DNA of 64,000 nt from Utricularia gibba (GCA_002189035.1 NEEC01000010.1:434001-498000), one strand, 5' to 3'; positions 3,770 through 31,292 are shown, numbered from the stretch's first letter. Numbers and translations are program-made. The notes: generated by a model from the letters alone, not told the origin.

Positions 3770-4362
3770 TTGACAATGTATCGGGTCGTAAATAACAGCA
3801 CCAATTCCCGATAAGACCTCACGCTGCAAGGTTCTAGCTACTTGAACCAAATCTTTCTTCCCTTCTGGAGCGAACAAGCGAATAGCTTGCACTTCATAGC
3901 TTCCGAGTGTCGGACCGTTGCCATTCTCAAGTCGAAGTCGGTCACATGGGATATAAGGTCTCCTTTTCCGTCATACGTGGGTAATCCATCAGGGAACTTG
4001 AATCCCTTCTCTGATTCTTCCCCAATTAACTCGTCCGAGAAAGGGTTAAAACGTAGTGTTGGGGTACCCACTACTCCTTCGACATTGCTTTTCAGGGCCA
4101 AATCGATATTGGCCAAAATGTCCCCTCTCCCAGTACACACGTTCTGGTCGAAGGAATCTTTGAACCCTCTGCTCTTTCTCGCCTTGGGTGGTGTTTCTCT
4201 GCCGATTAGCCTTTTCTTCTCGTGAATCTCGTCTAATCCTCTCCTCAACTCTTCCTCTCTTTTTTCCATAATTTCGCTAGCCGTATTCCCTCCCCCTGTA
4301 CCCGGCTCATAGATGACTTGGTTGCGCCTCTTCCTTCGCAATATTTCTTCCTCAGTCTCAGA
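3770..4362 (-). pseudogene. Tat retrotransposon gag, 3' part (interrupted by the hAT element)
   Basis: PFSDELI..FKFPDGLPTYDGKGDLISHVTDFDLRM..EAMKCKLFACSL..WF is a retrotransposon gag motif. It joins in frame to 18144-18245 across the TSD. Confidence 0.85.
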
Positions 4363-4528
4363 TAGAGGTGGGTTCGGTTCGAACTGAAATCGTCGGTTCC
4401 GGTTCCGGTTCGGTTCCAAGGGATGGATGTCCGTACGGTTCACGGTTCCGAATAGTAAGGTATATAAGTATATTTAAATATAAATTATACCAGTATTGCT
4501 ATCGCGAGTGTTGAATTTTGTTTTTAGG

Positions 4529-5199
4529 CAACCATTAAGGGACTGAAAGGCTTGAGAAATAAGGTATGGCCTTTTTATGAAGATTGGGTAGAGATTTTTG
4601 GAACAGATCGTGCTACCGGGAAAGATGAAGTTGCTCATGAGGAAGCTGCCAACCGTGCATCCACTGAAGTCGAAGGCAATGACTATCATGCCAATATGAA
4701 CAATGAACCAGAATCTCCAACAACTCAAATACCAGCTTTTGTGCCAATTTCAGAATCCGAATCATCTGCTCTTAATGGTGATGCTGTTGAGAATAGTGTA
4801 GGGTCACACAAGAGGAAATTTAACAAGAGACAAAGAGAGGATGAAGTTATTGGAGAACTTATTGGAGAATTAAAAGCAATGCGTAAAGGATCAGATGCTA
4901 TCACTGAACTTATACAACAAAAATTGATGGCACCTGTTGATGCTCAATTAAAGCAACAAAATGAGGCTATATCCATCCTTCGTAAAATGGACATGTTACT
5001 GACACCCATTCAGATTGTGCATGTGTCTTAGGTATAGTCTTACACAACTCTCATCATTTTTAATATCCCTATTGACAGATAATTAAATCAGTTTTCTTAT
5101 ATTCAGCTTGTGTTGAAGACGCCTGCGGACGTGCAATTGTTTTTGTGCCTCTCAGATGATGAGTGCAGAGCATTGGTCCAACAACTTTTCAGGGAATAG
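4529..5199 (+). pseudogene. PIF/Harbinger ORF1 (Myb/SANT-like) C-terminal exons
   Basis: KGLRNKVWPFYEDWVEIFGTDRATG after an AG acceptor. Last exon LVLKTPADVQLFLCLSDDECRALVQQLFRE*. The N-terminus is missing. Confidence 0.8.
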
Positions 5200-5329
5200 G
5201 TTTTATCAATGGTGCAATATTTTTTTGGGCAGCATCATCTGTTGGTGCTATTCAAGACCACGGAAAGGATCAGTTCATCCGACTTCTTACATGCACCATA
5301 GACATTATATAGTTTTGAAACATCATAGT

Positions 5330-5746
5330 TTTGAGATCATTTTCCAAGCACCCACATCTATCGTCAGCGTGTCTGGGAATGAGTGTTTCAGAAGATTTTC
5401 CAGGCACCCACTTCCATTGTATGGGTGTCTGAAATCATATATATTTATTTATTTATTTATTTTTTAATTTTTTTAATGTTTTTTAATTTTTAATTTTTTA
5501 ATGTTTTTTAATTTTTAATTTTTTAATTTTTTTCTAATTTTTAATTTTTTTATTATTTTTTAATTTTTTTCGGTTCCGAACCGAAACAGTCGGTTCATAC
5601 ATGGGTCGGAACCGTCGGTTCCATGGTTCCAAATTTACCGAACCGAACCGGAACCGTACGGACATCCATCTCCTAGAACCGAACCAGAACTGGAATCGCG
5701 GTTTCGGTTCGAGCCGCGGTTCCGGTTCGAACCGAACCCACCTCTA
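5330..5746 (-). mobile_element. Extra internal hAT terminus, inverted copy of the left-end type
   Basis: Reverse complement begins TAGAGGTGGGTTCGGTTCGAAC and shares GATGGATGTCCGTACGGTTC with the 4363 end. No matching TSD partner was found. Confidence 0.85.
5445..5570. repeat. (TTTTTAAT)-like AT minisatellite in hAT subterminal region
   Basis: Repeated ttttt(t)aat(g) units visible directly. Confidence 0.8.
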
Positions 5747-6153
5747 CTCCCGAGGCACCTACATGAGGGAAGTGGGTGCTTGGAAATGATCTTACCCACT
5801 CTTCCCAGACATCAACACAATGCATTATTCTGTAGGTGCCATTCAAAGTATAACTAAGGATCGAATGCTAATAAAATTAAAAACTAAGAAACTTTCATAT
5901 TTATCATACGGTTTAATAAATAACATATTTAAATTATTTATATTTTTAATAAACATATGTCATATGATTATAAAAATATTTTTTTTAATTGTTGCATCTC
6001 GCATGTTCTCGCATGCTTAGAAATAAATATGATTTATAAAAATGCTGATAATATTCTTAAGTTCACTTTTCAACGACATGTTCTACCATGTTTAAAAATA
6101 ACAAATGTTCAATCTTGGATATGATAGTTAACAGGAACACAAAAAATGAATGC

Positions 6154-7450
6154 CTATCTATTCATATACTCATTCCACATAATTCTTGCAAGCTCATCAC
6201 GCCATGTACACCACCGTGGAGAGGTTTCAACAGCTGTTATGAACTCACTAGCCCCTTGCTCAGCAGATTCAGTAAAATTCTCTGACACTTCGGCTTCCAA
6301 CAGATCATATGCCATATTCATTCTTACGAAATTGTGTAATAAAGCACAAGCAAGAATAATGCCACTTTGTGTTTGAACTGGATAGTAGGATGCTGACCGA
6401 AGAATGGCCCATCGAGTCTTTAAAATTCTCCATGCTCGCTCAATTACATTTCTCGCTGAGGCATGCCGCATGTTAAACAACTCTTTCGCATTTTGAGGTG
6501 CTGAATTTCTAGTACTCCATTCTTTTAAATGATAGCGTACATTCCGATATGAAGCTTGGAAGCCATCACAATTGGTGTAGCCATTATCCCATAGATAATA
6601 GCAACCTGCAATCACAACATGCATTTGTATAGTAGAATGTTTCTGAAAACAGCCTGAAACAATGGAAATTCATGCATGGAAAAACCTTTAAAAATCTTAG
6701 TAACTTCACAACTAACCTTTACATACTCGTAGACCACCAACTTCCTTCAACAAAGCACTTTTAAGTATATGGCTGTCAGCAGTCGATCCTTCCCAACCAG
6801 CAAGCATGTAAATAAAATTCATATTTTGATCACATACACCCAAGACATTGAAGGCTATTGTACCTTTTGACTTATCACACTCAAGCACCCCACGCCTCAA
6901 TATAGGACCCATCTAAAGCACCTAAACAATTCTACACTTATTACAAACATTCAACAATTAATAGTTATTAAGATAAACATTGCATAACCAAAAAATGAAA
7001 TAGTACCTCAAAAAAACATAACCTTGCTGTGGCACTGGTAGTAGTCACAGGTTCACCCTTAACTAACAGCTTATCCTGCAGGCATAAAACAGCTGCAAGA
7101 ACGGCCTTGAAGTGACAGCTAATTGTCCAAGTCGATCTTTTGAAGGATGACTTTTGAACTCGCATCTTCTTATGATGGGATAAAATACCTAAGAAAATAC
7201 AGACTTTCTCACTGATAGTTACATACTTCGAGTCACGAAGTAGACAACACAATCGTCTAAAGACGTCTCGATTCATCCTCAATTCCTCCAAAGTTGTGTT
7301 GTTCATGTTGCTAACTAATTCATGGAGATGTTCAATTTGTCATGGCATTTTCGATGTATATGAGTATCAGCATTGCTGTCTTGAACCATAAGAACGTAGT
7401 CGGAGTAGCACAATAAGCACAATAATATGAGCAATTTCGAAATTCCTTTG
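6154..7450 (-). pseudogene. PIF/Harbinger DDE transposase, decayed
   Basis: LRMNRDVFRRLC..EKVCIFLGILSHH, CLGALDGSY, NVLGVCD..AGWEGSTADS, YYLWDNGY, ELFNMRHASARNVIERAW..LK.RW..LHNF, W..RDELA..MW. Confidence 0.92.
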
Positions 7451-8140
7451 CAACAAATATGCCAATAGCAATAACTGAGCATTCTCATCAATTGATTCCA
7501 TCCAAAAAAATATTTTGGGTTCCTACAATTAATTCATCACATATAATAATTAATGCAAGAGAGACTACATGCTTATGCGTACACATATCAGGAACAAAGC
7601 AAACAATCAGAAAATACAAAATGACTATGTTTGCATTATTAAAGAAATTATTCATTCATCTTGGCTGCTAACCTTCGATTTTGATGTCTCCAAATGGTGG
7701 GACACCGAATGAATACTTTGTTGTGCCGCCGAACAGTCAAAACATGGACCTCAATTACTTGAATTTGAGACCCAACAATGGGTCTACGATCCAAATTTTC
7801 CAAGCCGGTATAGAAAATATTCACAGGTTGAGGAAGTAAATCTGTAGATGGAGGAAGAAATTCGTAGATTGAGGGGAAACAGAATCGTTAGGGTTGAAAA
7901 ATAATTTTCCCCCAAATTTAATTCAAGACAAGATGTAGATGTATTTATGGGTATTTTAGACTTTTCATAATCAAAAAGTTATCCATGTATAAGGTATAAA
8001 ATTAAGGAGGGGTTTTGATGGGGATACTTTTATGACTTATATAAAGGAAAAAAGTATCCCGAAAAAATTTATTTCTGCTTACCAAACATGTTATTATTAT
8101 CCCGCATATGGATATCCCATCTTATCCCATCTTATACTTA

Positions 8141-8156
8141 TTACCAAACACGGTCT
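8141..8156 (-). repeat. PIF/Tourist-type terminal inverted repeat (right end) next to TTA/TAA
   Basis: Reverse complement reads (TA)AGACCGTGTTTGGTAA, followed by GGGATAAG subterminal motifs. The left TIR was not found. Confidence 0.6.
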
Positions 8157-8526
8157 TAAAATACTAATGTGAAGACTAATGTGGCATCATCATATCTGAA
8201 ATTTTTATTTAAAATATATTTATTATGTATATGTTTATCTCAACGGCTAGTACATGTATTTGTGACTGTGCAGACTGTGGAGTTGCACATGGTTTTGAAA
8301 TTAACCGTTGCTATTACTTTATTAATAAAATTTTTATATATATATGATATGGTTATCTTATAGTTTTCCACTACTTTCTCATATTGTCTCATCACTCAGT
8401 ACTAGAAATAATTCTATTTCAACTTCTACGTGTTTGGAGGTACTCTCAAGTGTCAAGTTTCAGATTTCTACTTGGACGACATTGGTGAAGCCTGCAGGGT
8501 AATAGGTTTTTTTTATTTTTTACAGA

Positions 8527-10620
8527 ATGGAGGGGTCTGGTTTGCAAAATTCTTCTCAAGCATTTCAAGCTGATTCTTCTATACCTTGCGTTTTTGAAAA
8601 TGATAGAGAATTTTCTTTTGGGAAAGACCTTCAATTTTTACAAGAGCTTGAATGTGGTCCTTTACCCGAACAAGATAATTTTTCTAGTTCTCAAGAAGCG
8701 GGTTCTTCTACCTCATCGAGTCTCCTTTGTCATAAAAGATCGAAAAACACTAGTAATGATTCTTTGGATATTCGAGAACATTTTGTTTTTTGTAATCCCG
8801 AAAAAATTTCCTGCAAATATTGTGGTAAAGAGTACACTTTCAAAAAGGGTTGAGGAACCGGTACATATAAGAGGCATGTTAGGGAGAAGCATAATGATAA
8901 ATTACCTCAGTTTCGTCAAACTAAATTATGTTTAGGGGGTGACAATAGTGTGGGATTATCTAATTTTGTTTTTAATTATAAACTTTTTCAAGTAAGTTTG
9001 GTGCGTTATTTTATACTTAATGAACTTCCTTTTTCATTAGTTGAAAAACCTTCTTTTAATGATATGTTGAAACAAGCTCAACCGGGATACACAAATTTTT
9101 CTAGGAAAACCGCACATCATATGACACTTGAGGATTTTAAAAATATGCGTGACACTTTAATTTCTACTTTTGAATCTCTGCATTGTAATTTTTGTTTGAC
9201 TTGTGATGGTTGGAAAGATTGTAACAATGAGATTTATATTGTTATTACATGTTCTTGGGTAGATAATTCTTGGTGTATGCAAAAATGAATTTTTCAAGAA
9301 TAGCTATCACCACATAATGGTTTTCCTATTGCTAAAATCATTGAAAAGTTCACAGCATTTTATGGAATATCTGATAGGATTTTTTCTATTTGTTTGGATA
9401 ATGCCTCTGCAAATACAAATGCTATAGACATTTTGAAAAGTAGCATGAATTCTATCTTAAATAGCATTTTTTTCCACATTAGGTGCACTTTTCATATACT
9501 AAATTTGTGTGTTCAACATGGTTTGAAAGAATGTGAAAATTTTTTAACTCCTATTCGTGATTTAATTAGTATGATTAGAACTACCCCTAATACAAAAGAT
9601 GATTTTAAAAGGATTTGTCAAGAAAGGAACATCTCTTATTGTAAATTTAAAAGTGATTGTCCAACTAGATTGAATTCTACATATGACATGTTACAATTTT
9701 TTATTCCTTATGAACATGTTCTTATTGAATTTTGTGAATCTGTAATGGGTTACAATTTCTTGACTCATTCTAATTTTGAAAAAATAAGAGGTTTAGTAAA
9801 TTTATTAGAAATATTTTATTCTTGTACTAAGATTTTGAGTGGTATTTACTATCCAATTCTCAACTTGTGATTTCATGTATTTGTAAAATTTCGTTTGCTT
9901 TTTATAACCATCAATGTGATTGTGATTTTTTGGGAGACATAGTGCGAAATATGAAAAATAAGTTTTTGAAATATTTTGATGAAATCTCACATTTGTTTCT
10001 TATTGCACCTATTTTGGATCCCCGGGTTAAGTCTAAAGGTATGAAAACATTACTTGAATGTATTTCAGAATCATTTAGTGTGGATGATGTTGTTTTTTTC
10101 ATTAAAAAATTTGAATAAATAGATGTTGATGCCAATAATGTTCTACGTGCCATGTATTCCCTTTATGCTTCTAAATATAGTGATCTTAGTGTTCCTATTC
10201 CTAAAGCATGTAACAATTCGATATTTGGTAGTTGCAATCCAATGGACATTATTCGTAGGAAGCATAGTTCATTTGTGTCCTCCACTTCATCATCTTCATT
10301 AAACTCTGTTGATCAAATTACACTTTACAATAATGCTCCTATTGTTGAGGGTATTGATGATGACAACTTTGATATATTGGGTTGGTAGAAGACAAATTCT
10401 ACTACTTACCCTATCTTGGCTAGAATGGCCAAAGATCTTCTAACACCTTCAGCATCTATAGTGGCATCCGAAAGTGCATTTAGTGCAGGGGACAAGTTCT
10501 TAATCACAAGCGCTCCAAATTGAACGTAGAGACTCAGGAGACATGCATTTGTCTAAAGGATTGGTTGGAGGCTGTGAAAAGAAATCAAACCTTATCCTCA
10601 AGTTCAAGTGAGAGATGAAG
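8527..10620 (+). pseudogene. hAT transposase (BED finger, catalytic core, dimerisation domain), multiple stops and frameshifts
   Basis: CKYCGKEY..GTGTYKRH; LPFSLVE; LTCDGW; DNASAN; HIRCTFHILNL; DCPTRLNSTYDML; APILDPR; DILGW..YPILARMAKDLL..VASESAFS. Confidence 0.95.
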
Positions 10621-10745
10621 TTGAAGACTCTTAATTTGAAAACATTTAGTGCTTCATGAAATAATATTACTTTGTAAGAAAATGTTGTATTCATGTTTTT
10701 AATTAAAAGAGGGTGCCTAGAATTTGGTTGCAGACTTGCAAATAT

Positions 10746-11290
10746 CCTCCCGAGGCACCCACATGAGGGAAGAGGGTGTCTAGAAAACTGTATCAAATAC
10801 TCCTTCCCAGGCACCCATATAAGCGAAGTGGGTGCCTGGAAATCACTCTTCCTAGACACTCACATGATGCATTATTTTGTAGTTGCCATCCAACTCTCTT
10901 TCCTGGACACCCTCATGAGGCACCCACATGAGGGAAGAGGGTGTTTGGAAAACTATCTCAAATACTTCTTCCCAAGCACCCATATAACAAAAGTGAGTGC
11001 CTGGAAATCACTCTTCCCGAACACCCACACAATGCATTCTTTTGTAGGTGCCGTTCAACTCTCTTTCTTGGACACCCTCCCGAGGCACCCACATGAGGGA
11101 AGAGGGTGTGTGAAAAACTGTCTCAAATACTCCTTTCCAGGCACCCATATAACATAAGTGGGTGCCTAGAAATGACCTTACCCACTCTTTCCAGACACCT
11201 AAACAAGGCATTATGGGTTCCTAGAAAAGGCTATCTGACTCTATTTCCAGACACCCACACGAGGCAATGTGGGTGTCTGGAAAATGGTCT
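10746..11290 (+). repeat. Tandem array of ~165-bp units (about 3 copies); one more unit at 5747-5845
   Basis: Recurrent (C)CTCCCGAGGCACCCACATGAGGGAAGAGGGTGT at ~10747, ~10914 and ~11078, with internal GGCACCCA..TGGGTGCC inverted motifs. Confidence 0.9.
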
Positions 11291-12003
11291 ACGTGATAGA
11301 CGAATATTCTCTATTTATTGAAATTAATTTGTAGTAATTAGGATATATAAAATCATTTCATTTTCAAATTTTTATATTCCAATTAATGCAGCAACAAATT
11401 TTTATATTTATGAAAATTAAGAATACTTTCAAATATTGCGCAATCCCCAAATTTCGGGTACGGGTGCCTAATTTTGCATTTCTTGTGCCAGTCGCCCACA
11501 TTAGCGATTCTGGGTGCCTCAAAATTAGAGTATTAATTACACGATGGGTTCACAATTCGCATCGATTCAAATGAGCGGCACACACCTTGTCTGAAAACAA
11601 TGGAAACTATTACCGACAACCTACGAAAGTAGGGATATCATTGCGCCTAATCATTAGCTTATGATTTGGTGTATTAAATCAAATCCCCATGCACCCATAC
11701 ACAGTGCTACACATCACCACCCCACTCCCCACTTTACCCACTCCCCACATTGTCAATTAAGAAAACCCTAATCTCCACCCATCTGGTAAGAAATTTTTTT
11801 TACCTCTTTCCCCCTCCCCCCCTCCCCAGCCGAAAGCGACCGGATGCCCCCATAGTCCCATCACCTACTTGGAGTGTTCTTTAAATTAAACAAGGTAAGT
11901 GATTTATTTTCCACCATGTGTTGCTGATCTATGTTCCAAATTGTAATACCTTGTCGAATTATTGTAGTTTGAATTTTTATACAATTCCTATGGGTGTTTG
12001 TAG

Positions 12004-14023
12004 ATGCACACTTCTAAAAAATTGAGAACTAGATTCTTGATACCGGATGAATATGAGATTTGGGACAAAGAACCGGATGAGTTGATTGAGAATAAAATTC
12101 CAAACTGTGTGGGTCCAATGGGATTTGCCTAAAGCACAGAACATTTTCGTTGTGATTTGCGATTATCATTATTGCCCTTTTTAGAAGAAATATTAGAATG
12201 TTTAGAGATTCTTTTATCTTATTTGACTCCAAAATCTATCTCATATGTGTTGGTCTTTATTAATATTTGTGAGGAGTTATGTCTTGAGATGGAACTTCGC
12301 TATTTTTTTGCTGTGAGTGTATGCTCTAAGACTCTAAACAAGAACCACTACACCCTAAAGGGAAAAAAAAGGTTGGTGCTAGTGAAGTATGTGAGAAGAG
12401 GATTTGAAGAATGCTAGACAAGTTTTGTTTGGATATGTACTCCAATGAAAATCAAATTTGCTCAAATTTATACTAATTTGAGCGAAGTAGGCAAGGCGAA
12501 AGGTAAATCTTGCTTTGTATTGTTAGAAGAAATATGAATAAAAATATTCCATATTTTTATTGAAATATTCCATATTTGTATTGAATGTTTTTATTGAAGT
12601 TATTATGATTGAATGTTTTTTTTAATCTACTCTTATTAAAACTATTTTTATTGAATATTTTTATTCAATACCTTTTTCGAATATGTGTATTGAATTTATT
12701 GCTGTCGAGTTTACACTTATCATGTTGAATATTCTTATTTAATATTTTTGTTGAATATATTCTTAATAAATTTACTTTTATTGTAGGATTTGATACCTTG
12801 TCCAAGAGGAATATACAAGATCTTATTCTCGTCTTCTCAAGTATGCAAAGGAGTTTTGTTGACATTTTACCACCATTTGTGGATGCACCGGGGACAAAAC
12901 CCTATTGGTGTGGTGTGTTGAAAAACCCTAGAATCTCCCAAAAGAATGAAGACTTGTCTAGGAATGAGAGGACACAAGATGGAAATGATGTTAAAGGGGA
13001 CGAGGTCACACATGGTCTCGATGATGTCGATGATAAACTTGAATTTATAACAGAGGAGAATGAAGAGCTTCGCTACAAGTTGGATTGGTATGAGAGTCGT
13101 TGGGCATATACTAGACCTCCTTTTAGTGCCTCTGAGCCTCAACGAAAGCTGATTATCTTGGATGTAAATGGTGTGCTAGCAGACATCATTTATAGGGCTG
13201 GAGCGTCAAGGTCACGAATCCCTCCAGATAAAATCATATATGGCCGATCAGGTACGTTAACACAAGACTTATTTTTTGTGTGTTATGTGCATTCACGATT
13301 TATGAGATATCATAGTTAACTTTTGGTGCAAATTATGCAGTCTTTCTACGTCCACATGCCCGCGATTTTATTAGGTGGTGTTTGGATAATTTTGATGTAG
13401 TCTTATGGTCATCTCGTGGGGTTACGTGTGCTGCATCTTTTTTTCTTAGGTTGGTATTTAGAATTGGTGCAAACAATTGCAAGTGATTTATTTTGTAGGG
13501 AGCAACTACAAGCAATCACTAAATGGGTCTTTCCACCTTCGTTATTCGGCAAACTCATTTTCGTATGGGACCAAACCATGACAACGGACACCGGCGTACG
13601 TGTTCACAACAATCATAGCAAACAGTTTACATGAAGGAGTTGAGTCGTGTATGGGCTGTCAACAATGGATTGAACACAAGATATGACCGTCACAATACCT
13701 TATTAATTAATGATTCACCTCACAAGTCAATGAAAAATCCGGTAAGTCATTTTTTGCTAGTATACTCTTGCATACACTTGGTTATACATCAAAACTAACC
13801 CTTCAATTTTTAGAAAAATAATGTTGTTTTTCCAAATCCCTATTCGCATACTAATAGGGATGATGCATCACTCAATGTTGATGGTGAGATGCTGACTTTC
13901 CTTAAAGGGTTATGGCATGCTAATGATGTTCCAAGTTATGTTAATGAGAATCGAATAGGACAGCCTCCCATACGTGAGGGACATGCCTTATGGGAGTATT
14001 ATGTATGCCTACATAATTGTTAG
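12004..14023 (+). pseudogene. Spliced cargo gene: gypsy-type-transposase-like (PF04195-like) exon plus FCP1/NIF HAD phosphatase-like exons
   Basis: Inferred exons 12004-12502, 12787-13251, 13341-~13420, 13499-13741 and 13814-14023 with GT-AG introns. FCP1-like motifs: KLIILDVNGVLADI, VFLRPH..FIRWCLDNFDVVLWSS, KLIFVWDQ, NTLLINDSPHK..NP, FPNPY. Two premature stops and two 1-nt frameshifts. Confidence 0.8.
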
Positions 14024-14224
14024 ATGGAGCCTCTGATTTCTAAAGAGCCGTCCCATTTATTTTCAATTAGACAGACACTTACCAAATGTCACATTTTGAT
14101 TATGCCATTGAATTTATTTTAAAATAAATGAATAAATTAATGACAATACCTACGAAACAACTTATTTATACTGTATGGCGCTTATTTTGATTTTTTCAAT
14201 TAATTTATAGGGACAGAACATACA

Positions 14225-15520
14225 TAAAAATGTTTCTTGTAGGGGTCACCGAAATATTGAAATACTATTAAATTTGATTACAGGTGTGAATTGTTTATTA
14301 AACGATTTCCAATTACAATTGGCATCCATATTTTAAAAAATATTTTTTCGTACATAATTATTTTAAATAATTTTATGCTAAAACACAGAATTATAAGTGT
14401 GTTGTTGACATACAATCACACTTTAATTTAAAACATTTTTAGCAAAAATATAATACGAATGTAAGTTCTTGTCTAACTTAACCTCAGATGTTGTGAGGCT
14501 TAATAGAGTAAAACATTTGAGATACAATATACATATACTTGTGTGAAAAAATTTCATTTTTATAATCCTACCTTAAATATTTAGCACATTACAACATTTA
14601 TGATGATAAACGTCATCATCAAGGACCATTTATATTAAAAAATACATAAATTTCCACTTCGTGGTTTAGGGTTTTCAGGGTTTTAGGGTTTAGGGTAAAT
14701 GAAATATCTGAAATATTCCCGCCTTTTAATATGTTGCAAATGTGAAATTTTGGATGGTACATATGTAACATTGTGTTTTAGGGGCGGCAAAAAAAATTTA
14801 TGGAAACACTCTCAAATGTACTTACGGATGTGAATTGTTTATTACATAATTTACAATTCAAATTGATGTCCATCAGATACAAAATATTTTTTGTATCGAA
14901 TTTCTATTTAAAAAAACCGGTTCAAAAATCTGAAATTACAAATGTATAATTCAAAGGCAATATAATGACATTAAAGTTTATAAATAATCATCCACATTTA
15001 CATTAGACACTAATGTATCTTGTTCTCTAATTTAAATGTGAAATATTATGATGCTTTATAAAAAAAATATTGAACATATATTTGCAAAGAAACGTGGTTT
15101 TTATTATTTTTAAACTTTATTTTAATTATCGACATTTACATAGTAATGATGATAAACTTCATTACTATGAACAAGAACTACTAAAATTTTTAATGTGTAG
15201 TTTAATTAAGGGTTTAGGACAATTAAATTTGTAATAAATTCTCGTCATTTTTTTAAAAAATTAAGAATAGTTGGATTTTGAGAATGTACATTCAAACACA
15301 AGTAATGCATAGGTGTCGCTGAAATATATCCATAACTTTTTCGTTTATCATTTTTAAAATACTGAAAATTTGAAATTTGGGATGGCACATCAAATAATGA
15401 GTATTTTGTAGGTGCCGCAATTTTTTTAATTATTTTAAATAATTGATTTAGACTATATATAGATGTGAATTATTCTATGCAATATGATTTTCTGAAAAAG
15501 TTGGCATCCATTGTATAAAT
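14225..15520 (+). repeat. Old degenerate tandem repeats of ~540-600 bp
   Basis: Recurring (TGT)AGG(G/T)G..., GATGTGAATTGTTT and TTG(G/AT)(C/G)(A/T)TCCAT blocks at ~14235, ~14775 and ~15405; ATGATGATAAAC at ~14600 and ~15145. Confidence 0.55.
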
Positions 15521-15764
15521 GTACAACCCTACCTAGTTTACATCACCTTATGCTGCATACAAAGGCTCTTCTTATCAGTGTCGTCGCGCTCTTGAAAACC
15601 TAGAATTCGTCGGCTTAAAATCGGGTAATCTTGTTGTTGCAACTTACATTATTTTTGTGAAATGTATTCTATGCATTTGTTGCTACAGTATGCGTTATAT
15701 ATTCAGTTGGGTATAGTTATTAAAAATTATCTTTTCATATAATTATGTATCCTTTATTGATTAG

Positions 15765-16113
15765 GGAACGGATAGATTTCGTGTTAAATATTTCATCCCA
15801 ACAGATTGGTTGACAATTCATGCTCTGCAAAACACACCTCTTGACGCCAATCCCCCTCATGAGCATCCAAATGCTTGGCTTGTGTCTCGTAAAACATTTG
15901 ATGCTGGTCTTAGGCTACCTATTCATCCCTTTGCTCTTGATGTGCTCACCTACTTGCGATTGCCTATTAGGTTTTTAGCATCATCTTCCTATAGTATTAT
16001 ATTAGCCTTCTTACACTTGTGTGAAGAAGAATATGTAGAACCTTCCTTGTCAAATTTTTTTGCACTATCTCTTCCAAAAAAAGCTCCTACTCAAACATGG
16101 ACTATAACAATAT
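15765..16113 (+). pseudogene. Second gypsy-type-transposase-like (PF04195-like) exon, cut by a solo LTR
   Basis: After an AG acceptor: DRFRVKYFIPTDW..KTFDAGLRLPIHPFALDVLTYLRLP..SSYSIILAFLHLC..EPSLSNFF. Confidence 0.7.
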
Positions 16114-17490
16114 TGATAAACGGGAATTTCCTAATATCGTTGCAAATAAAAATAAAAAATCCGTATCAAATAAATTTATAATCCCTAATCTACACAAAAT
16201 AAAAATTTGGAAAACTTGTACAGTGGATATCGGGGTCGATCACGAAGACCTTGTGCTTGCTAAGTGTTTTAATACATGCATAATTTCGGATAACAATAGG
16301 TCTTAGTCTAAGCTCGGACTAACAGTGGTAAACAAGTTCAGTAAACAAGGTAGGTAAGCAATATCAGGTTTCTACGCTAGGGTAATAGGTACTGGTTTTG
16401 ACTCAGACTAATATGAGGATGCCTTAAGGGTCTGTGGGTTGTGTTATGCTAAGATTCCTAACTCAATTTATTATCTTCCTACACTCACAACTTCAAATAA
16501 CCTAAGTCTACCCAGGTCATTCATCATATTTTTGGCTTAAACTAGTCCCCAATATCATAACCAATTTTGCAATTGGGTCTACCCGCATGCAAGGTATATA
16601 GAACTAAATCTACCCGGTTCTACTGGTTCTACCCTGGACTAACACCGACTGCTCCCGTCTTGGTTTGTTGGTCTACCTCTAAACGAAGCATCTAAGTTGT
16701 GAAACTACTTGTTTCCCTCCTTTGGTCTACCCATGGTTTGTTAAAAACAAGAGTTAAGGAATACACATAAATTTCATTATCAAACCTAAGCACACACCAC
16801 ACCCCTTCACCTTAAGGCATCCCTAAGACTCTAGCCACTCATGCTTTGGAAATAAAACACGATTTCATTCATATAAGCTGGCCAAAATGGCAGAAACATT
16901 GTAACAAGTCAAATGCAGAAACTTGAAATGTTCAGAAAAACGGAAAGCAAATAGATATTGTTTTTCCGCCCGCTATCTACTGTTCACAGCTCTGAATAGT
17001 AGTGCTGGACTGGGCTCCGGTTGTGTTCATGATGATGAAGGCCTCTCTTCCCCCCTCTGGTTGGTGTTTCTCCCGTTGGGGAAGAAGACCCCCTTGCGTC
17101 CCCCTCGCTATGTGTTCTCCTTTTCCCGCTCTCTCCTTTTCGAAAATAATATCTTCCCTCATTTACTCCCACGCACAGTTTCTGACACCATCACTGTTCT
17201 CGCCCTGAACTTTTAGACTGTAGGTGGCGGAACAGTGCTCTTTATCTCTTGCAGCTTGGTGACTTTCACGAAATTCAGATCTCTTCCTTGATTCTTGGGT
17301 TGCTGCTAGACTCCAAAATCGGGTTAGATATGGGGTGGGCTAAATCAAAGAATTTAGCCCACTAATCACACCAAAAATTACATTTTCCTAAATTTCATAA
17401 AAACACTTAAAATTATAAAATAAACACATAAACAAGATTAAAAATTCATGATTTTTCATATCCTAAAACCTGAAAATTTGTGTGCTATCA
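16114..17490 (-). mobile_element. Solo LTR A1 (Athila-like)
   Basis: TG...CA termini; TSD AATAT on both sides; highly similar to 28940-30357. Confidence 0.92.
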
Positions 17491-18143
17491 AATATTTATT
17501 AATTTTTAGTGAAATTAACTTATTTCGGATTATATTATATATTAAACTTATACCAAATTATTTATTATATATTGAACTTATACCAAATTTATTTATTTCA
17601 TATTATTATATTAAACTCTCACCAAATTACTTATTTTTACAGATAATGTTAATATAACATTGTTATGTTTTATTTTTCTGTGAATATGTAAGACTAAATT
17701 CTTTAAATGTATTCACTTTTTAATAATAATAAAAATTTCAAAAATATTAAAGATTTAAACTAAAAATAATTTATTAGTAATATAGTTGAAAAAAATACTT
17801 TTTCGTACATATATATTAATATGATTTAAAATAAAAATCAATTCTTGAAATATTTAATATTTATTAAAATTTTCACTTCCAAGACACCCATAAGGATTCA
17901 TATGGGTGCCTAGAAAGCACCTACAAATAGTAACCATGTTTTCGGTTACGGTTCAGTTCGTAAATCTTGGTTTCGGTTTTGAATCGAAACCGTCTGTATA
18001 GTTCCAGTTTCGGTTCAGTTCAAGCCTTCCGGATACGGTTCCAAACCGAAACCGGAACCGTTGCCCACGGCAAACCGCGGTTTTGAAACCGACGGTTCGC
18101 TGGAACCGCTCGGTTCCAAACCGAACCCACCTCTAGTCTCAGA

Positions 18144-18245
18144 TGCAGTCTCCATCTCCTGGAGATAGTCCAGTAGTAAGGGTTGCTTATCCATTCGTCG
18201 TTTTGTTTCGGGCGTCCCCCCTCTTGCGCGTTGGAGTTCACCCAC
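18144..18245 (-). pseudogene. Tat gag, 5' part
   Basis: GELQRARGG..QEMETA joins S-E-T-EEEILRRK at 4362 in frame. It lies downstream of the PBS and LTR. Confidence 0.8.
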
Positions 18246-18436
18246 GAGGATAACTTAATGTCGGAAATATCTCCGTCATGAGGGCTTTAAGTTGTTCCGT
18301 GTTGATTACCATAAGGTCGGGGTCTTATACACCGGAACTGCCTTCGTTGCTGGAGTTGGTGGACGTGTTGTTTTCCACCATAATGAATGTTTGGTGGGTA
18401 ACTTCTGTGGATTTCTCAAGTGGAACAATAGATCTT

Positions 18437-22290: not shown

Positions 22291-22701
22291 AATCAAATGT
22301 CATGTAATTTAGGTGTTATGAAGCATTTTATATTGTAAATGTTTTGATATTGGGCATTTAATTGTACATATTTTTAAGCCAAACTTTAATTATTGCATCC
22401 TTCTCATATGAACCTCGAATTTATAGAGATTAGCAACTCATGAACATCAGGAGATTTAATGTTTAAAAATGAATCCACCCAAGTTTATCCTCAAAAAAAT
22501 GAGTATCTTGCAATTAGATTATGAAAGAAATGAGAAATAAGGAGTCACATTTCAAATAGAAAATGAATTGGAAGTAATAATCCTTAAACATTACAAGCTC
22601 AAAATATTGATAAGTTAAGAGTGATTCAAAAAAGAGAAAATTTCTCATAAAAGTCATAAAAAAAAGTTAAAGATACTTCAAAAAATACATCTTTAGAGTA
22701 T

Positions 22702-23750
22702 TTATACACGGAAATTTCTTAATATCGTTACAATAAAAATAGAAATCCCTATCAAATAAATTTATAAGCTCTAATCCTCACAAAATATAAATTAAACACA
22801 AAGTGTACAGTAGAATTTAGGGTCGATCACAAGGAGCTTGTGCTTGCAATGTGTTTTTTGTGATGCAAAATGCGGTGCAACAGTGGTTCTTAGTCTAATC
22901 TTAAACTAACAGTAGTGAACAAGTTCAGTAAACAAGATTGGGTCTCAATGCTAAAAGTAAAAAGTGCTAGTTCTAACTCAGAGTAATACTAAGATGCCTT
23001 AAGGATTTGCAGGTGATGTGGTGCTAAGGTGTCTAATTTAATTTATCATGCTCCTACACACACAACTCTAAATAACCTAAGTCTACCCAAATCATTCATC
23101 ATATTTTCGACTAAGCTAGTTCTCAATATCATCACCAACATTGTAATTAGATCTACCGGTATGCAAAGCACATAGAACTAGGTCTACCCGGTTCTACGGG
23201 TTCCACCCCAGACTAACACCTACTACTCCCGTCTTGATTTGTTGGTCTACCTTTAAATCAAGTGTCTAAGATGCGAAGCTGTTCATTTCCCTCCTTAGGT
23301 CTACCCATGGAATATTAGAAACAAAAGCTAAGAAGCAATGATGAATTTTGTTATGAACCTTAGCTCCCACATAACCATTTTACTCTCTAAGGCATCCCCT
23401 AAGGCTTAACTACTCATACTTTGATGGTAAAACATAATAATATTAACATCAAGCAACGAAAATACCAAAAACATCGTGAAAGAGTTGGTTGCAGAAACTA
23501 AAAATGTCAAAAAATGAAAGTAAAATAGAGATAGTTCTGGTTTCTGTCGGCTACTGTTCATAGGCCGGAACAGTAGCGCTGGACTAGGTCTTGATCTTCG
23601 CTCTTCACGCTGGAGGTTCTTCTCTAGAAAAATCGCCTTCCTTTTTCTTTTTGGTTCCTGTTTGTCGTGTTGGAGTTGGGGGAGAAACCCCCTCGTATGT
23701 GTTCTGTTCGAATTGGTCACCCTCTTTGCGATTCTCTCTCCTCCGAGAGA
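22702..23750 (-). mobile_element. Truncated family-A LTR
   Basis: Homologous to A1/A2 from its terminus (acggaaatttc.taatatcgtt..tcaaataaatttata). The other end is missing and there is no TSD. Confidence 0.75.
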
Positions 23751-28709: not shown

Positions 28710-31292
28710 TGATAATCATGGTTTTTAGTAATTTTAAATTAGAAAAATGACTGTTATTATTGTGCATAATTAAGATTTTGTTAAGTGTTTGATGTTTTTG
28801 TGATTAGCAAAGCTATTTATATATTTTATTCCAGATTGGGTCTAAATCCTTGATTTAGTTGAAAAACCTTGATTTAATTATTTTCCTTAGAGCAATGCAC
28901 CACAATCCCAATAATCCAAATCATGAAGAACTGAAAATGTGATAAACGGAAATTTCCTAATATCGTTGTAAATAAAAATAGAAAATCCGTATGAAATAAA
29001 TTTATAGTCCCTAATCTACACAAAATACAAATTTGGAAAACTTGTGTAATGGATATCGGGGTCGATCAAGAAGAGCTTGTGCTTGCTAAGTATTTTAGTA
29101 GATGCAAGATTTCGGATAACAGTAGGTCTTAGTCTAAGCTCAAACTAACAGTGGTAAACAAGTTCAGTAAACAAAGTAGGTAAGCAATATTAGGTTTCTA
29201 CACTAGGGTAATAGGTACTGGTTTTAACTCAGACTAATATGAGAATGCTTTAAGGGTCTGCAGGTGGTGTTATGTTAAGCTTCCTAATTCAATTTATTAT
29301 CTTACTACACTCACAACTTCAAATAACCTAAGTCTACCCAGGTCATTCATTATATTTTTGGCTTAAGCTAGTTCTCAATGTCATAACCCACATTGCAATT
29401 GGGTCTACATGCATGCAAGGTATATAGAACTAAGTCTACCCGGTTCTACTGGTTCTATCCTGGACTAATACCGACTGCTCCTGTCTTGGTTTGTTGGTCT
29501 ACCTCTAAACCAAGCATCTAAGTTGTGAAACTACTTGTTTCCCTCCTTAGGTCTACCCATGGTTTGTTAGAAACAAGAGTTAAGGAATACACATAAATTT
29601 CATCATCAAACCTAAGCACACACCACACCACTTCACCTTAAGACATCCCTAAGACTCTAGCCACTCATGCTTGGGAAATAAAATACGATTTCATTCATGT
29701 AAGTTGGCCAAAATGGCAGAAACATTGTAAATAAGTAAAACGCAGAAACTTGAAATGTTCAGAAAACAGAAAGTAAATAGGATTGTTCTCCCGCCCGATA
29801 GCTACTGTTCACAGCCCGGAACAGTAGCACTGGACTGGGCTCCGGTGCTGTTCTTGATGATGGAGGCCTCCCTTCCCCCTTCTGGTTGGTGTTTTTCCCG
29901 TTGGGGAAGAAGACTCCCTTGCGTCCCCCTGCTGTCCGCTTCACTTCGTGCTCCCCTTCTTTTTTCGAATTAATTTCCTTTTCTTTTGCTTCACTCCATT
30001 GCACTGTTTCTGACTGCCAGTACTGTTCCTGACCGCGAGTACTGCTCCTGGCCTGAACTTGCAGACTGCGGTGGCAGCAGAACAATGCTCTTTGTCCTTC
30101 TCCGGATTTTGCGCCCTTTTTTGCTTGTTTTACACGCTTGCAAGTCTGATTTTCGGCTCATCTCCCTGCTGAACTTACTGAGACATTAGTAACAAGAGTT
30201 GTGGACTAAATCAAAGGATTTAGTCCACTTTTCAACATAATCACATAGGATTAACATAAACACCACTAAATCATGAAAAATCACATTTATCTAAACTAAA
30301 CCATAATAAAATATAACCATTTTGTATTTTGAAATTTAGGAAAAATGTGTGTCATCAAAATGCATACTGGATGTGGCAGTAAAATGGGACAAAAAGAAGG
30401 AAAGAGAAACACCAAATTTCAAAGAGACAAGAAAGTAAACTTTTGAACAAGATAGGATAGATCAACTTCAAAAATATGAAAGGAGTCTTGAAAGGGGATC
30501 TGGAGAAAAATCATAGAAGAATGATGAAGGAAGATGGAAGAAACCAAGAACCAAACTCGTCTTTGAAGATTTTCTTTATTTATCAAAAATATTACTCTTA
30601 GTTAGAAATAAATCACAACGATTTAACATTCTTCATTTAACTATTTATATTTCATTCCTTTTTATTTTCTTGGTATCAAGGTGTGATATGAACATATTGT
30701 GGATGATGTTTTATGTGCTAGTTTTCTTCTACATGAGTAACTAGTATCAAATGGTGCCTTAGAACCAAAGAGGACAAAAATGTTCATTGTTCATTAAATC
30801 ATATTAACCATATAATTGTGCTAGTTGCTTAACAAACTACAGGAAGGGAAAATAATGGTATGTTCATCATAAGCAAACCTTAATTAGAGTTAGATCAAAG
30901 ATTAAGGGAAAACAAGGGTTTGGAAAGACTTGAACTTTTATTGATTAGATGAATGATTTTTTGTTTGGATGAGATAAAGATAGTGATGAACATGTTCTTT
31001 GAAGTCTTAAGGCATTGCATTGATTTCCTTTAGATAGAACTTTGATTCACTCATTTATTTTTTTTATTATATTGTATTAGAATTTTGCATTCAACCTAAC
31101 TTAGACTTAATCTTTCATCATGAAAGAATAGAATACATTATCTTTTATATGATAAGCACAAAACTCTTCGTGTTCGATATTAATCTACTATGCTTGTACT
31201 TGTCTTATGATTAAGTGTGAATTATATTTATAAATTTATTTGGTAGTAAATTTTGCATTTTATTCAATGATCTACGAATTTTTCGTTTATCG
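28710..31292 (+). mobile_element. Older family-A-like LTR hosting solo LTR A2
   Basis: Starts TGATAATCAT.., ends ..TTTCGTTTATCG, and is similar to 59537-60693. Its TSD is not convincing. Confidence 0.6.
28940..30357 (-). mobile_element. Solo LTR A2 (Athila-like)
   Basis: TG...CA termini; TSD AAATG on both sides; highly similar to A1. Confidence 0.92.

Follow-up and report, generated by a model that had tools for sequence, protein, structure and literature searches.

A pseudogenized copy of a probable TRP28-NIF accessory gene family carried by a hAT transposon of Utricularia gibba

To our knowledge, few accessory proteins of plant transposons are understood, and VANC is the main example. NIF domains, as established for the SCP1/FCP1 family, act on phosphoserine residues of the RNA polymerase C-terminal domain (CTD) and on related substrates. 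The targets of VANC, an anti-silencing factor of VANDAL MULEs that removes DNA methylation, are short motifs in the non-coding DNA of its element, often arranged as tandem repeats (PMC5735166, PMC10398659). Another domain, TRP28, has been described only in transposable elements (TEs), where it occurs in antisense accessory open reading frames (ORFs) of Retand long terminal repeat (LTR) retrotransposons; DNA binding has been predicted for it, and the function of these ORFs is unknown (PMC11963269). PMD-PP7 fusions (MAIL3), as well as the MAIN/MAIL1-PP7L module, take part in TE silencing and in gene expression, and this type of fusion arose more than once (PMC7156037). Here, we describe a locus at positions 12004-14023 (plus strand) of a 64,000-nt stretch of Utricularia gibba DNA (GCA_002189035.1, NEEC01000010.1:434001-498000; in the following, the window). 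We consider it, with a probability of about 0.7, to be the pseudogenized copy of a multi-copy, transposon-borne accessory gene with five exons, which encodes TRP28, a linker, and a NIF domain, and which rides in a 13.8-kb hAT element.

The gene model was derived from the six-frame translation and from the splice-site contexts on the plus strand. The result is a plant-type split gene of five exons, in which every exon boundary conforms to GT/AG (Table 1). A preliminary description of the window had proposed that the first exon ends at a phase-1 donor and that translation is resumed at a phase-1 acceptor at 12787. The splice contexts bear this out, and the codon split across the junction 12502/12787 (G/GA) keeps the frame. 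From there, as had also been predicted, the frame runs through an acidic, possibly coiled segment of exon 2 (∼12950-13090) into an FCP1-like domain with an LDVNG motif, which was scored here exon by exon. The copy is broken at four sites, all of which had been anticipated, two of them (the frameshifts) near 13420 and 13630. Exon 1 contains two in-frame stop codons, TAA at 12130-12132 and TAG at 12415-12417. The first frameshift, at 13419/13420, is one letter short, leaving the end of exon 3 in phase 0 when exon 4 requires phase 2; at the second, 13621/13622, the frame switches within exon 4. The conceptual product, with N inserted at both frameshift sites, comprises 499 amino acids.

The N-terminal half of the predicted fusion was identified in the interval between both stop codons of exon 1 (12133-12414). 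When analyzed with hmmscan, it matched PF04195 at profile positions 5-61 of 69 with 26.6 bits (E value 7e-6), which is marginal, as the gathering score of the profile is 26.2 bits. The domain had been announced as "gypsy-type-transposase-like"; the match to PF04195 stood, but the label did not, the Pfam name being a misnomer for what is a domain of accessory ORFs (PMC11963269). In the alignment of the Retand proteins, the conserved core of TRP28 consists of G21, P25, L34, P46, N47, and F55 (PMC11963269). The core of the copy in the window reads DLRLSLLPF and that of other copies LRLPLLPF, owing to a T>C exchange at 12166 which replaces Ser by the conserved Pro. A second, diverged TRP28 fragment (15810-16112, plus strand) scored 37.9 bits against PF04195 and was 33-36% identical to exon 1 (E value 2e-9), with 25 invariant columns in the core alignment. 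This fragment is cut at ∼16113 by a repeat of ∼1 kb, and no NIF part follows behind it. An AlphaFold prediction of the TRP28 domain, for which an alignment of two sequences was used, reached a predicted local distance difference test (pLDDT) score of 43.9 and was unusable.

For the C-terminal half, exon-sized pieces, rather than the joined product, were scored against PF03031. Exon 3 matched profile positions 39-61 with 15.6 bits and an E value of 0.013, which is below the gathering score of 21.8; its E value against TIGR02245 (HAD-IIID) was 0.087, and its top match in the PDB was UBLCP1, a CTD phosphatase of the NIF family. The closest Atlas clusters were NIF for the second part of exon 4 (13628-13741; 0.90, 78/100 matches) and likewise for exon 2 (0.88). 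Exon 2, exon 3, and exon 4 independently point to PF03031. Exon 5 alone matched no family and yielded no usable Atlas lead, and searches of the PDB with exon 2, the second part of exon 4, exon 5, and the piece containing motif I gave no match. The four motifs of HAD enzymes are present in the correct order: LDVNG (13158-13172), VVLWSS (13397-13414), YMKELS (13628-13645), and LLINDSP (13700-13720), including the Ser of motif II, the Lys of motif III, and the acidic pair of motif IV, which is NDSP here but, owing to G at position 13709, DDSP in other copies (29 contigs). Motif I (LDVNGV, 13158-13175) does not conform to DxDx(T/V); the nucleophilic Asp is kept and the acid/base Asp is replaced by Asn. 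No well-supported difference in the codons of motif I was among the differences listed for other copies. Because DxNG retains the nucleophile without the acid/base residue, the NIF domain may bind its substrate instead of turning it over.

To what extent the lesions are shared within the family could be judged from contigs of two U. gibba DNA runs, which were compared with 11700-14100 at a threshold of at least 80% identity. The two runs contained 1078 and 1304 matching pieces, respectively, distributed over all 30 bins of this interval, introns and upstream region included; 113 and 74 of them were at least 99% alike, so some of the copies are very similar. As more than 1,000 pieces cover the whole gene, the family is of high copy number, which speaks against the notion that a host gene had merely been interrupted by transposons; this notion was rejected. 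Three of the four lesions, the stop at 12130 and both frameshifts, are private to the copy in the window. An A>T exchange at 12131 in 18 contigs restores the TAA stop to TTA (Leu); at 13419, other copies read CGTGG-C-GG/GTATGT, which is the phase-2 donor needed by exon 4; and an extra C behind 13621, present in 10 contigs, returns exon 4 to one frame. Because these lesions are private, the gene of the family was once intact. Substitutions among the copies were mainly C>T and G>A, the pattern that methylated repeats usually show. Insertions and deletions (indels) among those listed, excluding the own lesions of this copy, were found nine times in non-coding and once in coding sequence, despite 62% of the stretch being coding (binomial P 0.001), with the caveat that AT-rich introns easily gain or lose letters. 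Intron 1 recurs along with the exons in other copies, with a shortening by 8 or 209 nt in some of them, and the boundary between exon 1 and intron 1 is bridged by records of other copies.

Taken together, a once-functional accessory gene accounts for the locus better than a random captured fragment does, because in other copies three of the four lesions are absent and conserved residues of TRP28 and of the HAD motifs are kept. The preliminary description had suggested that the locus may be the relic of such a TE-encoded accessory gene, and this part of its claim is supported by the three private lesions and the kept residues; the fourth lesion, the stop at 12415, was absent from the differences listed for other copies. 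Several further observations weigh against the reading as well. The PF03031 score of exon 3 stays below the threshold, and with Asn at the acid/base position, catalysis may be lost. The ease with which introns change in length softens the indel count. No contig record among those listed bridges the boundary between intron 1 and exon 2 by at least 31 nt, though the depth is continuous there; for this reason, the fusion rests on the phase of the splice sites, on tiling, and on the equal repetition of the parts. RNA spliced across 12502/12787, as the exon structure proposed in the preliminary description would imply, was sought and not found; two putative RNA runs lacked a contig even at 80% identity, which is no proof of silence, and none of the RNA runs searched contained the stretch. 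The ownership of the gene is blurred by the mosaic carrier, in which fragments of Harbinger, an additional hAT end in inverted orientation, and a nested repeat are found. Finally, the mechanism considered below is a proposal.

Table 1. Coordinates of the TRP28-NIF gene, its carrier, and neighboring features in the window.
Feature	Position	Strand	Remarks
Exon 1	12004-12502	+	499 nt; ATG 12004; N-terminal region and TRP28 (PF04195); donor CGAAAG/gtaaat, phase 1
Intron 1	12503-12786	+	GT..AG; mainly 13- and 21-bp AT-rich tandem repeats (12542-12695)
Exon 2	12787-13251	+	Acceptor ttattgtag/GATTTG; donor CAG/gtacgt, phase 1; linker, acidic segment, NIF start with LDVNG
Exon 3	13341-13420	+	NIF motif II (VVLWSS); donor altered
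Exon 4	13499-13741	+	NIF core, motif III Lys and motif IV; donor CCG/gtaagt, phase 0
Exon 5	13814-14023	+	NIF C-terminal end and tail; TAG stop 14021-14023
Tandem array	10746-11290		165-bp unit × 2.6 (10746-11173), upstream of the gene, carrying palindromes
hAT element	4363-18135		13.8 kb; 18-bp terminal inverted repeat (TIR) TAGAGGTGGGTTCGGTT
Target duplication	4355-4362 and 18136-18143		Perfect, 8 bp, GTCTCAGA
Decayed hAT transposase	8527-10520	+	Weak zf-BED, hAT-like RNase-H, Dimer_Tnp_hAT; stop 10386-10388
PIF/Harbinger DDE transposase fragments	6154-7306	-	PF13359 42.4 bits, PF04827 27.7 bits
gag-like ORF of LTR retrotransposon	3841-4362 and 18144-18254	-	Split by the hAT insertion

That the gene is borne by a transposon, as had been proposed, was supported by its position within the TIRs of the hAT element, which in turn is bounded by a perfect target duplication. 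The two parts of the gene, with phase-compatible splice sites, belong to one repeated unit. The boundaries of the carrier are precise: removing the hAT element and one copy of the duplication in silico resulted in a continuous gag-like ORF of 211 amino acids on the minus strand, the left part of which had no Pfam match. The transposase of the element is decayed, its ORFs being spread over several frames, and scored 40.7 bits against PF14372, 38.2 bits against PF05699, and an E value of 0.066 for zf-BED. A second left end of the element, at 5717-5746, is inverted relative to the one at 4363-4392, and this inner member of the pair lacks a target duplication. Between the two ends lies an ORF (4552-5031) without a Pfam match, which by eye resembles the tail of the Myb-like protein of Harbinger elements. 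The doubled, inverted left end resembles double-Ds, which suggests alternative transposition or a macrotransposon. The ∼1-kb repeat, which starts with TGATAAACGG, is present at three positions of the window, once nested in the hAT element (16114-17105) and again at 28940-29930 and 22699-23588, with identities of 92% and 75%. The idea that the gene sits in a small nested element of its own was rejected, as no inverted-repeat pair flanking the gene was found within the hAT element.

Upstream of the gene, the hAT element contains a tandem array of palindromes. These are 29-30 nt long and have conserved 9-nt arms (AGGCACCCA and TGGGTGCCT) around variable spacers of 11-12 nt. The window contains nine of them, all nine inside the hAT element, and 0.25 would be expected from shuffled sequence. 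Single palindromes are located at 5402-5430, at 5753-5781, and at 17882-17911, the last being just inside the right subterminal region of the element. Conserved arms with freely varying spacers are what the site of a dimeric DNA-binding protein would look like, making the palindromes a candidate for such a site.

The mosaic nature of the carrier bears directly on the alternative that the gene is foreign to this hAT family, that is, that a segment derived from a Harbinger element or a MULE was swept up by hAT ends through macrotransposition or alternative transposition. We regard this origin as possible, if tentative. The same element contains both the Harbinger DDE fragments and the ORF with the Myb-like tail, the extra inverted left end at 5717-5746 has no target duplication of its own, and the array units beside this end share homology with the array that precedes the gene. 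However, a pair of TIRs that would delimit such a segment around the gene is missing inside the hAT element, and the palindrome at 17882-17911 lies just inside the right subterminal region of the hAT element itself.

Neutral transduplication would explain the locus without any function. In that case, a DNA transposon would have taken up a piece of a NIF/FCP1-like host gene, in the manner of Pack-MULEs, beside a TRP28 ORF, and the chimera, although never functional, would have become abundant through amplification of its carrier. The copy in the window is indeed dead and no RNA contigs were obtained; the acid/base Asp is replaced by Asn; individual contigs contain many deletions, and the strong C>T and G>A bias is typical of silenced repeats. 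The protein databases also yielded no relatives: word searches with exon 2, with the region of the NIF start in a stop-free stretch of 196 amino acids, and with the second TRP28 ORF found none, a full HMMER search with exon 2 against 1.84 billion representatives returned 0 matches, a scan of metagenome loci confirmed no relative, and exact-product look-ups of three ORFs had none on record. These blanks do not show absence, given how short queries the size of an exon are and the limit that the word search sets on candidate length. Against neutrality stand the three private lesions out of four, the TRP28 Pro and the DD of motif IV kept in other copies, indels that, among those listed, avoid the exons 9:1, and the fact that the domain is complete, with none of the four HAD motifs lost and the introns in correct phase. 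Neutral capture of a gene fragment implies that the copies show no coding constraint; judged indirectly, from the private lesions, the kept residues, and the listed indels, this was not what was found, and we consider neutral transduplication improbable.

It is more improbable still that there is no fusion at all and that the exon for TRP28 belongs to one transcription unit and the NIF exons to its neighbor, which possibly starts at ATG 12843, with the splice 12502/12787 being only apparent: no spliced read was found, the Met at 12843 is in frame in exon 2, the frames would match by chance in one of three cases, and stand-alone TRP28 fragments (e.g., 15810-16112) exist, but a strong donor (AAG/GTAAAT) faces an acceptor with a polypyrimidine tract and TAG/G in matching phase, the frame of exon 2 is open for ∼120 codons before the NIF domain starts, counted from 58 nt ahead of the acceptor, and exon 1, intron 1, and exon 2 recur as a unit, each to a similar depth.

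Returning to the TRP28-NIF gene as an accessory gene of its element, we infer that the protein served its carrier transposons. TRP28 would bring the protein to element DNA, its candidate target being the palindromes, which form the upstream array and also occur near the element ends. The NIF domain might then bind, or dephosphorylate, a phosphoprotein that belongs to the machinery of transcription or of silencing, for instance the CTD of RNA polymerase, and thereby favor expression of the element. Such a protein would follow a logic like that of VANC with other domains, and its architecture would parallel that of the PMD-PP7 module. The role we favor, by analogy and with low confidence, is that of a regulator which is targeted to the element and acts on transcription or silencing. 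A wider proposition is that TRP28-NIF constitutes an undescribed class of accessory proteins, encoded by a cassette with a palindrome-array promoter that is common to hAT, MULE, and PIF/Harbinger elements; TRP28 would dock on the palindromes, and the DxNG-type NIF domain would capture or dephosphorylate the CTD or a silencing factor, shielding the elements from silencing. This generalization appears doubtful at present.

TRP28 occurs across TEs of flowering plants; if this wider proposition were true, it would give this widespread domain its first function. That TRP28 is joined to a CTD phosphatase-like domain in a family whose gene stayed intact during its amplification points to a testable partner and pathway, namely a control of transcription or silencing that depends on phosphorylation, and the palindrome arrays provide a concrete candidate binding site. 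What the window newly contributes is the precisely bounded hAT carrier, the private lesions of this copy, and the palindrome array. In the literature, no description was found of a TRP28-NIF gene, nor of NIF/FCP1 genes in plant transposons, and an atlas of Arabidopsis TE products from 2026 mentions neither phosphatase, nor FCP1, nor PF04195.

The closest counterparts by domain are the TRP28 ORFs of Retand, which share PF04195 (26.6 bits here) and the LRLP..PF core, present in the family, and which likewise encode a non-enzymatic accessory protein of a TE; in contrast, the carrier here is a hAT DNA transposon and the gene contains introns, with TRP28 joined to a HAD domain of the NIF/FCP1 type, whereas a phosphatase partner of TRP28 does not occur in the account of the Retand ORFs (0 occurrences; PMC11963269). 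By arrangement, the locus resembles VANC of VANDAL MULEs, which is likewise carried as an accessory gene by a DNA transposon of plants, in that palindromes precede the gene as a tandem array and occur singly near the ends. No sequence relationship to VANC was seen, as Pfam gave PF04195 and PF03031 only, and the likeness, known here from the arrangement, is one of logic only. With the NIF/FCP1-like phosphatases of the host (SCP1/SSP/CPL and UBLCP1; PF03031), the C-terminal half has in common the order of HAD motifs I-IV and, as its neighbors in the Atlas, plant NIF clusters; it differs from them by DxNG in place of DxDx(T/V), by the TRP28 domain at its N-terminus, and by its high copy number within transposons. 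The PMD-PP7 proteins, finally, offer a precedent in which a transposon-derived domain is coupled, either in cis or in trans, with a domain of the protein phosphatase type. PMD is not TRP28, and PP7 belongs to the PPP family rather than to HAD/NIF; moreover, the PMD-PP7 genes are host genes, whereas TRP28-NIF is still carried by transposons.

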